A stretch of 64,000 nucleotides of DNA from Octopus sinensis (taxonomy: Eukaryota): contig NC_043014.1 in assembly GCF_006345805.1 (NCBI RefSeq), positions 49,476,001 through 49,540,000 of the forward strand, given 5' to 3'. The notes beneath the pieces were generated by a model, which saw only the letters and a program-made list of their open reading frames with translations, did no database searches and was not told the origin of the DNA. Within the stretch, counting starts at the first letter, position 1, and each line of letters opens with the position of its first letter. Made by a program: the position numbers and the translations under genes. Shown piece by piece: positions 51,601 to 60,600 of this stretch.

Positions 51601-54600
51601 TCGTAGACGCGCGCTAATACCCAGACGGGCTCGATATGAATCACGACTATAAGATACCCGAATTTGGTTAAACTGCACCGCAAAATGTCGGAGTAGTTAG
51701 GAATCTAAATCGAAGGGGACAGACACTCACACAACTTCACTTTTATATATAAAGATTAACACAACCCAGAGAAGGTATGTGAATTATGTTGTTTCATGTT
51801 ACCTTTGATTAAACAGACTTATGATCAAAGGCTTTCCAGCCATGAACATCCTAGCTTTTAGTCAACCCAGGACTACACTGTCTAACATGCCCATCCTCTT
51901 TGGTTATGAATTGAAAAGGATTTGGCTGCTATTTCCAGCAAACTGAATAACCACATTGAGGCTCTGTGATCAGTGTGATGAGTAGAGTGGTGGTATGATT
52001 TATGGCTACAACACATATATATACATACATATGACAGGCTTCTTTCAGTTTCCGTCTACCAAATCCACTCACAAGGCTTTGGACAGCCTGAGGCTATAGT
52101 AGAAGATGCTTGCCCTAGGTGCCACACAGTGGGACTGAACCCAGAACCATCATCATCATCATCATCATCATCGTTTAGCGTCCGTTTTCCATGCTAGCAT
52201 GGGTTGGACGGTTCAACTGGGGTCTGTGAAGCCAGAAGGCTTCATCAGGCCCAGTCAAATCTGGCAGTGTTTCTACGGCTGGATGCCTTCCTAACGCCAA
52301 CCACTCCGTGAGTGTAGTGGGTGCTTTTTACGTGCCACCCACACAGGTGCCAGACAGAGCTGGCAAACGGCCACGAACGGATGGTGCTTTTTATGTGCCA
52401 CCGGCACGAACAAGCTACTTACCACACAGCCACTCCTATGCCTATAATGTTGATTTTTAAGTAGATAATCCCAAAGGCAAGCCACAACATGATAATGTTT
52501 GAAGTCAAGCTAACAGTACAAACTGCTAGAACCAAACTAACAAGGTGATATCACTGATTCCTAATATCAATAATTTTGGTTTTGGATTTTGGCACAAGGC
52601 CAGCAATTTTGGAGGAGGAGAAGGTAAGTTGATTAGATTGACACTCACTCCACTCCCAGTGCTCAACTGGTACTGAAAGGATGGAAAGTAAAGTTGATTT
52701 GAGAGGCATTTGAACTCAGAACCTAAAGAAGGACAAAATATCTATTTCTTTACTACCCACAAGGGGCTAAACACAGAGAGGACAAACAAGGACAGACAAA
52801 CGGATTAAGTCGATTATATAGACCCCAGTGCGTAACTGGTACTAATTTAATCGACCGCTAAAAGGATGAAAGGCAAAGTCGACCTCGGCAGAATTTGAAC
52901 TCAGAACGTAGCGGCAGACGAAATACTGCTAAGTATTTTGCCCAGCATGCTAACGATTCTGCTAGCTTACCGCTTTTAATATCACTAATATTAAATGGTA
53001 AATGACTGGCAGCTATTCTGCTGTGAGAGTTTTCAGCAGAAAACATACCTGGGTAAGACATCGTGCCATAATCACAGGAGATTTCCTCGCAGAAGACATC
53101 TTCCCTGTCTTCAAAGTTTAACATTTCAACACGTTCATTTTCGGTCAGGTAGGAATAAACATCACTTTTTGTGAGCAGAGCGACAAACTTCGTTTCTCGT
53201 GGCAAGAGCTGAGCAAGGTACCTGGGGAAGAGAGAGAGAAGAAAGAGGTGTAAGTGAGAAATGAGGAACAGAAGACAACAACAGAGGATGGAGGTATGTG
53301 GAGTAGTGAATGCAGTGTACAGGAAAGAGAGATTACTCTTTTACTTGTTTCAGTCATTTGACTGCAGCCATGCTGGAGCACCGCCTTTTTAGTCGAGTAA
53401 GTCGACCCCAGGACTTATTCTTTGTAAGCCCAGTACTTATTCTATCGGTCTCTTTTGCTGAACCGCTAAGTCACGGGGACGTAAACACACCACCATCGGT
53501 TGTCAAGCAATGGTGGGGGGCCAAACACAAACACACACACACATACATGTATATATATATATATATACATATATACGACAGGCTTCTTTCAGTTTCCGTC
53601 TACCAAATCCACTCACAAGGCATTGGTCGGCTCGGGGCTATAGCAGAAGACACTTGCCCAAGATGCCACGCAGTGGGACTGAACCCAGAACCATGTGGTT
53701 GGTAAGCAAGCTACTTACCACACAGCCACTCCTGCGCCTAGATGATGATGACATCAAAGACATATGTAATGTGCTGTTACATGTTGGACAGGTAACATTA
53801 GAAGGAATTAATGGTACAACTCACCCTGTAAACCCTTTCAGGTATTCTCTTTGGGTATCATTTGAGGCTTTGATAGCATGCGATAACACCTGAAATAAAC
53901 AAACATATTTTATATAAATATCCACACTTACACACAAAAATAAAAATCTATAGACACACACACACACATAAATAGTGCTAAGCATTTTGTCTGATGGACA
54001 AATGATTCTGCTAGCTTGCCACCTTAATAATAATAGTGACTTCGAATTTTGACACAATGCCAGCAATTTTGGGAGAGGGGATTAGTTGATTACATTGACC
54101 CCAGTGCTCAAGTGGTACTTATTTTATTGACCCTGAAAGGATGAAAGGCCAAGCTGACCTGACTTGACAGCATTCACCCGGGGTGGGTTGAGCTGGCTTC
54201 ATTTATCCTCAATGCTGCATCTCTCACAAACGCCGACCAGGCCTGGCGATTTGAGGCTAACGACCGCGTGATCTCCAACCACTCCTTATTCCAGCGGCGA
54301 ACGCAGTAGATATGGGGGCCTAGGTTGGGTTCCAGATCAGCCTTGACAGTCATCCGTTGTCCACCACATCACTTTCGCCAACCTTGGAGGGGAGCTGCGG
54401 CAATTGCTTCGTAGATGAATTCTCCTGGCTGATGACTGAGGACATGACCCAGCCAACGCAGACGTCTCGTTAGGATGACTTGTCGGAGGGAGATGATTCT
54501 GCACTGGTGTTGCACCGAATTGTTGGAGACATTACAACATTACAAGCTGACCTCAGCAGAGTTTGAACTCAGAATATAAAGATGGATGAAATGCCGCCAA

Positions 54601-57600: not shown

Positions 57601-60600
57601 ATGAATTCTCCTGGCTGATGACTGAGGACATGACCCAGCCAACGCAGACGTCTCGTTAGGATGACTTGTCGAAGGGAGATGATTCTGCACTGGTGTTGCA
57701 CCGAATTGTTGGAGACATTACAACATTACAAGCTGACCTCAGCAGAGTTTGAACTCAGAATATAAAGATGGATGAAATGCCGCCAAGCATTTTGTCCAAC
57801 ATGCTAATGATTCTGCCAGCTCACAGCCTTCACCTTAATAATAATAATAATTCTTTCTACTATAGGCAAAAGACCTGAAATTTGTGGGGAAGGGGATAGT
57901 CGATTACATCAACCCCAGTATGCAACTGGTACTTATTTCATCAACCCTAAAAGGATGAAAAGCGAAGTCGACCGCAGCGGAATTTGTTTCTAAATATAGC
58001 ACAAGGAGTGAAATTTGGGGGAAAGTCGACCCCAATGCTTGACTGGTACATATTTTATTGACCCCAAAAGGATGAAAAGCGAAGTCGACCGCAGCGGAAT
58101 TTGTTTCTAAATATAGCACAAGGAGTGAAATTTTGGGGGAAAGTCGACCCCAATGCTTGACTGGTACATATTTTATTGACCCCAAAAGGATGAAAAGCGA
58201 AGTCGACCGCAGCGGAATTTGTTTCTAAATATAGCACAAGGAGTGAAATTTGGGGGAAAGTCGACCCCAATGCTTGACTGGTACATATTTTATTGACCCC
58301 AAAAGGATGAAAAGCAAAGTCAACCGCAGCGGAATTTGTTTCTAAATATAGCACAAGGAGTGAAATTTTGGGGGAAAGTCGACCCCAATGCTTGACTGGT
58401 ACATATTTTATTGACCCCAAAAGGATGAAAAGCAAAGTCAACCGCAGCGGATTTGTTTCTAAATATAGCACAAGGAGTGAAATTTGGGGGAAAGTCGACC
58501 CCAATGCTTGACTGGTACATATTTTATTGACCCCAAAAGGATGAAAAGCAAAGTCAACCGCAGCGGAATTTGTTTCTAAATATAGCACAAGGAGTGAAAT
58601 TTGGGGGAAAGTCGACCCCAATGCTTGACTGGTACATATTTTATTGACCCCAAAAGGATGAAAAGCAAAGTCAACCGCAGCGGAATTTGTTTCTAAATAT
58701 AGCACAAGGAGTGAAATTTGGGGGAAAGTCGACCCCAATGCTTGACTGGTACATATTTTATTGACCCCAAAAGGATGAAAAGCAAAGTCAACCGCAGCGG
58801 AATTTGTTTCTAAATATAGCACAAGGAGTGAAATTTGGGGGAAAGTCGACCCCAATGCTTGACTGGTACATATTTTATTGACCCCAAAAGGATGAAAAGC
58901 AAAGTCAACCGCAGCGGAATTTGTTTCTAAATATAGCACAAGGAGTGAAATTTGGGGGAAAGTCGACCCCAATGCTTGACTGGTACATATTTTATTGACC
59001 CCAACAGGATGAAAAGCAAAGTCGACCGCAGCGGAATTTGTTTCTAAATATAGCACAAGGAGTGAAATTTTGGGGGAAAGTCGACCCCAATGCTTGACTG
59101 GTACATATTTTATTGACCCCAACAGGATGAAAAGCAAAGTCGACCGCAGCGGAATTTGTTTCTAAATATAGCACAAGGAGTGAAATTTTGGGGGGAAGTC
59201 GACCCCAATGCTTGACTGGTACATATTTTATTGACCCCAAAAGCAAAGTCAACCTTGGCAGAATTTGAACTCAAAATGAAAAGCTAGAAAAAAATGCCAC
59301 TAGAGTATTTTGCTCAGCATGCTAATAATTCAACCAGCTTGCTACCATTACAATAACATTAAGAACAACAACAACAATAATAATAATAATAATAATTGAA
59401 GCAGAAGATAAGCAAATTAATGCTCGTAAACTTACAGATAGAAGGAACTCCGCCCCTTTCTGTCCTTCACTTCGCATCTCATCCATAAATGCTGATATCA
59501 CCACCTTTCCATCCATGACCTCTGACACGATGTTACAGGCATTCACTTGGAAACTCAGCATGCTGATATCACTGACATAGACAGATAGATAAATAATAAT
59601 AATAAGTAGATAAACAGATGTATAAATACATATAAATAAATTGTGGACTGCCCCTTGGAGATTACAGGTGAGGGTTCGGCAGACTTCTTGCTGAGCGACT
59701 CACAAAGATGATTTGTTTATAGTGATCAAATGCTTGTGCTGGACAAAATGGCATTGCCCATACAGATGTACAGTATGACACGTCTGATGGCAAAAGTGAT
59801 CACAGAGCAACACTTGGTATGGGAATTGAAACCATGATCTCGTGACCATAAGTGCAACACCCTAACCTCTAACCCATATACCCTTACTTGTATATATATA
59901 TATATATATATATATATATATATATAACGGGAAGGTTTACGAAAATAGATAAAAGACGAAGGCAGGTGGAGTACAAACAAACAAATGTATTAGTATGGCG
60001 CTCAGGAATAGAAATAGAAAAAGTCTTTTACGTTTCGAGCCTACGCTCTTCGACAGAAGGATACACAGAAAAGAAACAAGGAGAGAAAAAAAATGCGTGT
60101 AGGAGCTAACGCTCTATCATGGCGTCCAGACTTCGGACTTTCTGTCCTTCACTTCACATCTCATCCAAATATGCTGATATCACCACCTTTCCATCCATGA
60201 CCTCTGACACAATGTTACAGGCATATAATCAAAGTAAGCAACAAGAATATCTTCCACCCCATGGATTTATATGGATAAATACCATACAAAATTCTGGGGC
60301 ATCTGACTTAAGTACCATATTCATTTGAATATGAGATAGACTAAAGACTAAGAATAAATGAGAATATTCTTTTCCAGGTTTGGGTCATTCTGGAGCAGTA
60401 CAGTCAAAGGTATAATTGATTATATGATTGCATTGACCCGAAACCCATAGCCTGGTATTTATTCTGTTGACCCTGGAAAGGAAATAGGTGAAGCTGACCT
60501 TGGTAGGAATCAAATTCAGAACATAAAACGACATAATACCACAAGGTATTTTGTTCAAAGGTCTACCAATTTTGCCAAACAATAAAAGACATAAGCATTA

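Follow-up and report, generated by a model that had tools for sequence, protein, structure and literature searches.

A head-to-tail repeat of two INTS8 exons in the Octopus sinensis assembly: young duplication or haplotypes placed in tandem?

Does INTS8 of Octopus sinensis, the gene for subunit 8 of the Integrator complex, carry two of its exons twice, or are two haplotypes of one animal written one after the other in the reference assembly? The question arises from 64 000 nucleotides of contig NC_043014.1 (RefSeq assembly GCF_006345805.1, forward-strand positions 49,476,001 to 49,540,000; this whole stretch is called the window), in which a piece of ~3.19 kb stands twice, head to tail, within INTS8 on the minus strand. 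Exons are numbered w1 to w5 in the sense of the gene; w3 and w4 are repeated, and their copies are marked b in unit 2 and a in unit 1. From sequence comparison, we estimate at roughly 55% the probability that this is a real, young head-to-tail duplication within O. sinensis INTS8, specific to the lineage or to the individual. Such a duplication would most likely be polymorphic or private to the sequenced animal and not a fixed, expressed feature of the species, because no INTS8 of 1068 residues, the length expected from reading through both units, was annotated or found.

Self-comparison of the window returned the INTS8 repeat as its sole large near-identical repeat. Alignment of 53544-56764 with 56733-59922 gave 97.28% identity over 3231 columns (37 mismatches and 27 gap openings), and a spacing of 3158-3189 was obtained with a repeat finder. 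The units, the tracts that bound them and the satellite arrays inside them are as follows.

56765-59890, minus strand: repeat unit 2, upstream in the gene sense, with the last ~320 nt of the w2-w3 intron, w3b, a 117-bp satellite array, a fragment of the tail of a long interspersed nuclear element (LINE), w4b and the 5' half of a short interspersed nuclear element (SINE)
53576-56732, minus strand: repeat unit 1, downstream in the gene sense, with the same content but with w3a and w4a
59891-59926: TA_1, (TA)18 in the w2-w3 intron, bounding the duplicated segment on its upstream side; (TA)15 stands there in O. vulgaris
56733-56764: TA_2, the (TA)16 junction tract, with the flank of TA_3 on its w4 side and the flank of TA_1 on its w3 side
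53544-53575: TA_3, (TA)n(TG)n within the SINE of the w4-w5 intron, the downstream boundary
57925-59243: 117-bp satellite array of unit 2, 11.2 copies
54759-56082: 117-bp satellite array of unit 1, 11.4 copies

The three relevant O. sinensis introns were aligned with the introns of O. vulgaris and O. bimaculoides. The novel intron between w4b and w3a is an exact chimera of two introns. The w4-w5 intron supplies the part that begins at the w4 donor and runs to ...GCCTGTCGTATATATG(TA)n, with the 5' half of the SINE and its internal (TA)n(TG)n; the part that begins at (TA)nCAAGTAAGGGTATATGGG... and runs up to the w3 acceptor is the final ~345 nt of the w2-w3 intron. In O. vulgaris, which has a single unit, TA tracts stand at both breakpoint sites, (TA)15 on the upstream side of w3 and (TA)n(TG)n on the downstream side of w4, and TA_2 is an exact hybrid of the two with zero bases lost or gained. 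No N was found in the window or in the 57.6-kb O. sinensis locus L001 (GCA_006345805.1, CM016876.1; 100% identical to the window over 45,488 bp); the junction is therefore internal to a contig and does not mark a scaffold gap. Taken together, the hybrid junction, the TA tracts at both ancestral sites and the lack of a gap favour a real duplication. An earlier duplication at the same locus, a pseudo-fragment of w3 that is common to O. vulgaris, was also counted in its favour.

This anatomy is best matched by a duplication in which two (TA)n microsatellites ~3.2 kb apart, one in the intron upstream of w3 and the other within the SINE in the intron downstream of w4, recombined by unequal exchange or served as sites of slippage or template switching. 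The ancestral single-copy state, seen in O. vulgaris, has (TA)n at both sites. If the two homologues of a heterozygous animal took part in the exchange, a difference of ~1.3% between the units would have existed from the outset.

With the satellite left aside, 1783 bases align between the units; 23 of them are substituted (1.29%), and there are seven indels, of 20, 7, 24, 20, 1, 1 and 1 bp. When polarised with O. vulgaris, 14 derived states fell on unit 2 and nine on unit 1; each unit is 3.1-4.8% diverged from O. vulgaris. Both arrays consist of 11 monomers, and the order of the monomer variants differs between units 1 and 2. The substitutions on both units and the differing variant orders show that these are two genuinely different sequences and not one sequence written twice. 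Because an exchange between homologues inherits the allelic difference, the value of 1.29% neither dates nor refutes the event, nor does it discriminate a real duplication from an artefact. For the same reason an age of ~0.8 My, obtained from 1.29% on a scale of 3.85% per 2.5 My, was set aside and not relied on.

Duplications of this type are known from other genes. Intragenic, in-frame tandem exon duplications that arise through intronic repeats include the Alu-mediated duplication of BRCA1 exon 13, exon duplications in DMD and the partial tandem duplication of KMT2A. The INTS8 repeat is like them in being a head-to-tail exon block with breakpoints in pre-existing intronic repeats and a hybrid repeat at the junction, and in keeping the frame and creating a new splice-competent intron. 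It differs in that the recombining repeats are short (TA)n tracts, one of them within a SINE, and not of Alu size, and in being known here from an assembly alone.

The SINE that carries TA_3 belongs to a dispersed SINE-like element of ~405 bp (53336-53740) with an internal (TA)n(TG)n; further copies lie at 6388-6808, 16419-16826, 26395-26794 and 41207-41595, with 84-92% identity. The copy in the w4-w5 intron provides the downstream breakpoint. TA_3 is also present in O. vulgaris, and the host SINE is missing in O. bimaculoides. No tRNA-like gene was found at 50-64 kb with ARAGORN, and the label SINE is therefore based on the dispersed copies in the window.

The identity of the host gene was established from a 537-residue model made by joining 14 minus-strand exons from the window. 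This model matched PDB entry 7cun, chain H (7cun_H, Integrator complex subunit 8), with E 2.3e-69 in three stretches spanning human residues 341-994. The multi-exon model was used because the 67-residue peptide of the repeated exons alone gave a weak INTS8 match (E 0.19, residues 380-430) that ranked below a designed-repeat protein. A homology search retrieved a 1001-residue protein (P0001) that is recorded for O. vulgaris (CAI9737955.1) and O. sinensis (XP_036366926-8, 'integrator complex subunit 8 isoform X1') and is encoded on two chromosomes. The window exons are 100% identical to P0001, which matches Pfam PF25756 (TPR_INTS8) with E 4e-164, above the curated cut-off. Judged by these matches the host gene is a clear orthologue of human INTS8, as had been proposed from the letters alone. 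Its upstream end lies beyond 64000, and its last exon occupies 21516-21629. Residues 24-27 of P0001, encoded by an exon outside the window, read WFEF, the N-terminal motif of INTS8 that is reported to be needed for PP2A recruitment. The duplicated residues, 389-455 of P0001, correspond to human INTS8 ~376-441 in the helical middle part of the protein. The retrieved INTS8 proteins, human included, have this segment once, whereas the O. sinensis assembly has it twice.

The exons and introns around the junction are listed below in the sense of the gene.

60639-60736, minus strand: exon w2, single-copy, 98 nt; its terminal AG and the T of w3 give Ser
60138-60224, minus strand: w3 pseudo-exon fragment in the w2-w3 intron, copying only w3 nt 30-116 with 95% identity
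59436-59571, minus strand: exon w3b, 136 nt, P0001 residues 388-433, GCG at 59451-59453
57014-57078, minus strand: exon w4b, 65 nt, P0001 residues 434-455
56387-57013, minus strand: novel w4b-w3a intron, 627 nt, GT-AG, with the w4 donor GTGAGT
56251-56386, minus strand: exon w3a, 136 nt, GCA (56266)
53825-53889, minus strand: exon w4a, 65 nt, identical to w4b
53049-53221, minus strand: exon w5, single-copy, 173 nt; its initial G completes GG/G

Both copies of w3 have the acceptor tgtcag/T and the donor TCT/gtaagt, and both copies of w4 have the acceptor tttcag/G and the donor AGG/gtgagt. The first base of w3 is the third of a split codon and its end is a codon boundary; w4 starts at a codon boundary and ends after two codon bases. 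The two exons add up to 136 + 65 = 201 nt, or 67 codons, and a splice from w4 to w3 gives GG/T (Gly) in frame, with the junction sequence ...GGGTTTACAGG/TGATATCAGCATG.... One of the 136 bases differs between the w3 copies, GCG (59451) versus GCA (56266), both of which encode Ala; the w3/w4 pairs thus have one synonymous difference in 201 nt and encode identical peptides. The last ~345 nt of the novel intron, with the branch region, polypyrimidine tract and acceptor, derive from the w2-w3 intron, and the intron is formally predicted to be splice-competent. Relative to O. vulgaris, the polypyrimidine tract of w3a has gained one pyrimidine and that of w3b has lost one. The original prediction had reported the direct repeat with its two exons, the intact splice sites, the phases, the 201-nt frame arithmetic and GCG/GCA as the sole exonic change; every detail that was checked proved correct, and each of its two junction strings was found twice on the minus strand.

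The w3 pseudo-fragment has an in-frame stop, no splice sites and no flanking homology. It is identical in O. vulgaris and is therefore older than the species split, and it retains the ancestral T at a position where C stands in w3a and w3b alike. It may have arisen as a templated insertion.

The loci used for comparison were L002 (O. vulgaris GCA_951406725.2) and L003 (O. bimaculoides GCA_001194135.2). L002 contains one unit, in the order w1, w2, w3 pseudo-fragment, (TA)15, w3, ~1.4 copies of the 117-bp element, w4 and w5. In L003, w3 and w4 occur once each, and the 117-bp element is again present in ~1.4 copies. The orthologous proteins compared came from three Octopus species, Argonauta, a further cephalopod transcript and eight other molluscs; all those retrieved have 1000-1013 residues and the 67-residue segment once. 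Since O. vulgaris, O. bimaculoides and every orthologue have a single unit, the event is assigned to the O. sinensis lineage and an ancient, conserved duplication is ruled out; both the unit duplication and the expansion of the satellite are specific to the O. sinensis assembly.

The 117-bp element, at 16254-16431 of L002 and 11291-11468 of L003 (~1.4 copies each), is present as arrays of 11 copies in unit 1 and unit 2 of O. sinensis. Either the array grew in the O. sinensis lineage or it was assembled in that lineage only, and this preceded or accompanied the duplication of the unit. A mis-join mediated by the satellite was considered and rejected: the junction lies in (TA)n and not in the 117-bp array, and an error of register in the array would only alter the length of the array.

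The same assembly could result from a single-copy locus if the two haplotypes of one heterozygous animal had been placed in tandem by a long-read assembler or by later gap-closing. False (haplotypic) duplications in long-read assemblies of heterozygous genomes were reportedly described by Ko et al. in Genome Biology in 2022, and the INTS8 repeat resembles them in a copy divergence that equals heterozygosity, in an accompanying excess of BUSCO duplicates and in being missing from related assemblies, here those of O. vulgaris and O. bimaculoides. In the literature consulted, no haplotig purging is reported for this assembly. The unit divergence of 1.29% is close to the heterozygosity of the sister species O. 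vulgaris (1.22%; PMC10700109), and duplicated BUSCOs amount to 5.2% in the O. sinensis assembly versus 0.5% in O. vulgaris and 0.4% in O. bimaculoides (PMC10700109), a roughly ten-fold excess that points to uncollapsed haplotypes. Several isolated 1-bp deletions, such as noisy long reads leave, are present in the satellite array of unit 1. The RefSeq isoforms of O. sinensis have 1001 and 1000 residues; none has 1068, contrary to expectation for a homozygous duplication that was transcribed in the animals from which the RNA-seq was made. The w4-w3 junction was likewise found in no annotated or retrievable protein: the exact read-through proteins of 1068 and 1067 residues were not in a collection of 15 billion sequences. 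A search restricted to the junction (residues 431-480 of the 1068-residue query) returned only single-copy proteins with 50-60% coverage and none spanning it, a negative of limited value because octopus INTS8 fragments derived from RNA-seq are seemingly lacking in the collection (the cluster has seven members, none from Logan). The divergence, the BUSCO excess and the missing read-through product weigh against a real duplication, and they make a misplaced haplotype a strong and serious rival, to which we give a substantial chance, short of even. It is the junction that this explanation accommodates poorly. Haplotig overlaps normally stop at arbitrary points beside gaps, whereas the INTS8 repeat has no flanking gap or contig end (zero N in 64 kb), and the seamless join between its units falls precisely in two (TA)n tracts that were there beforehand. 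Long-read assemblers work with overlaps far longer than a TA tract of 32-36 bp, so that a false join at this place would presuppose a chimeric read. The original prediction had itself named tandemly assembled haplotypes as the main alternative; the allele-like divergence on which it drew is borne out and the BUSCO excess agrees with it, whereas the seamless (TA)n/(TA)n hybrid junction, with no gap, does not.

If the duplication is real, the default prediction for a duplicated allele, made from its splice signals, is that all four exons would be included and that an INTS8 of 1068 residues with residues 389-455 repeated would be produced; the novel intron has a normal donor, branch region and acceptor, and there is no basis for mutual exclusion. 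Stronger versions of the duplication were judged far less probable. That it is real, present in the O. sinensis germ line at appreciable frequency and spliced in is considered unlikely. Slightly less likely still is a special case of the real duplication: fixation in O. sinensis with complete inclusion by splicing, which would give a normal INTS8 of 1068 residues. The four exons and the novel intron with intact, near-identical splice signals, the preserved frame and the single synonymous difference between the exon copies are all as this case would have them, but the RefSeq isoforms of 1001 and 1000 residues and the negative exact look-up and junction-restricted search are not, and the 67-residue internal repeat that had been put forward was thus not recovered in any protein. 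The structure of the protein also argues against it. In the AlphaFold model of the 1001-residue P0001 (mean pLDDT, the predicted local distance difference test score, 74; 74-91 across the duplicated region) helices span residues 387-407, 414-441 and 444-460; the repeat starts two residues into the first of these and ends in the middle of the last. As its boundaries cut helices, the insert is not a clean helical-hairpin module. In human INTS8 the deletion of three residues already impairs assembly of the complex (review PMC9006982). It appears doubtful that the INTS5/8 module would tolerate the insert.

A regulated, mutually exclusive exon pair that diversifies INTS8, the other possibility raised in the original prediction, is very improbable. 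Mutually exclusive exons are said to originate by tandem exon duplication (Kondrashov and Koonin are credited with this in 2001, and Letunic, Copley and Bork in 2002), and the INTS8 copies, like such tandem-duplicated alternative exons, are adjacent, homologous and of equal length and phase. They differ in that the unit consists of two exons, that both pairs encode identical peptides, so that a choice between them would be silent at the protein level, and that no mechanism for exclusivity is apparent, the 627-nt GT-AG intron giving no steric or spliceosome-type incompatibility. The arrangement is moreover conserved in no relative (O. vulgaris, O. bimaculoides, Argonauta and eight further molluscan orthologues). 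An alternative pair is effectively refuted at the protein level, and only a regulatory role at the RNA level could remain. The three XP accessions of O. sinensis share one identical 1001-residue protein; they could reflect three choices of exon pair or variants of the untranslated regions.

A real duplication would be a very young and cleanly resolved case of a microsatellite-mediated exon-block duplication in an essential, single-copy transcription-termination factor. Its pre-duplication state would be kept in a sister species that diverged 2.5 My ago (the O. sinensis/O. vulgaris split is placed at 2.5 Mya; PMC10700109), and it would offer a worked example of the onset of an internal protein repeat. 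Were it also carried in the germ line at appreciable frequency and included by splicing, an essential Integrator subunit would have accommodated an in-frame repeat of 67 residues whose ends cut through helices in its helical-repeat body, and nature would have tested how plastic the INTS5/8 module is. An artefact would call for caution among users of the O. sinensis reference, which also served as an annotation scaffold for work on O. vulgaris (PMC10700109): intragenic 'exon gains' at allele-level divergence need confirmation at the level of reads. On either reading the event is of a known kind and no new kind of biology is involved, and the main practical value of the observation is as a flag on the O. 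sinensis reference.

Other features of the locus were noted during the comparison. A 2041-bp insertion in an INTS8 intron (window 33241-35281, minus strand) contains a 364-residue open reverse-transcriptase reading frame (Pfam RVT_1, E 7e-27). The exact empty site is found in O. vulgaris (L002 33711); the insertion is of LINE type, young, truncated at its 5' end and restricted to O. sinensis. The O. bimaculoides INTS8 models (P0014 and P0015) are without exon w2, and the intron just upstream of w3 is translated instead; L003 contains 1809 N, and the omission is probably an annotation artefact caused by a gap. In an annotated O. vulgaris isoform of 949 residues (P0012, CAI9737956.1) exon w1 is skipped and an acceptor 9 nt inside w3 is used, so that 'SDI' is missing. 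The w1-w2 intron contains a GC-rich 61-bp satellite (window 61346-62188) with ~13 copies and higher-order periods of 189 and 250 bp; related single copies are found at 52286-52408 and ~49864-50247. Long low-complexity tracts on the minus strand at 10500-12450 and 24560-25950 (Ser/Phe/Leu, Thr/His/Pro and Gly codons) give spurious open reading frames of 180-290 residues; they lie downstream of INTS8 and within its introns, and their composition is that of non-coding DNA.

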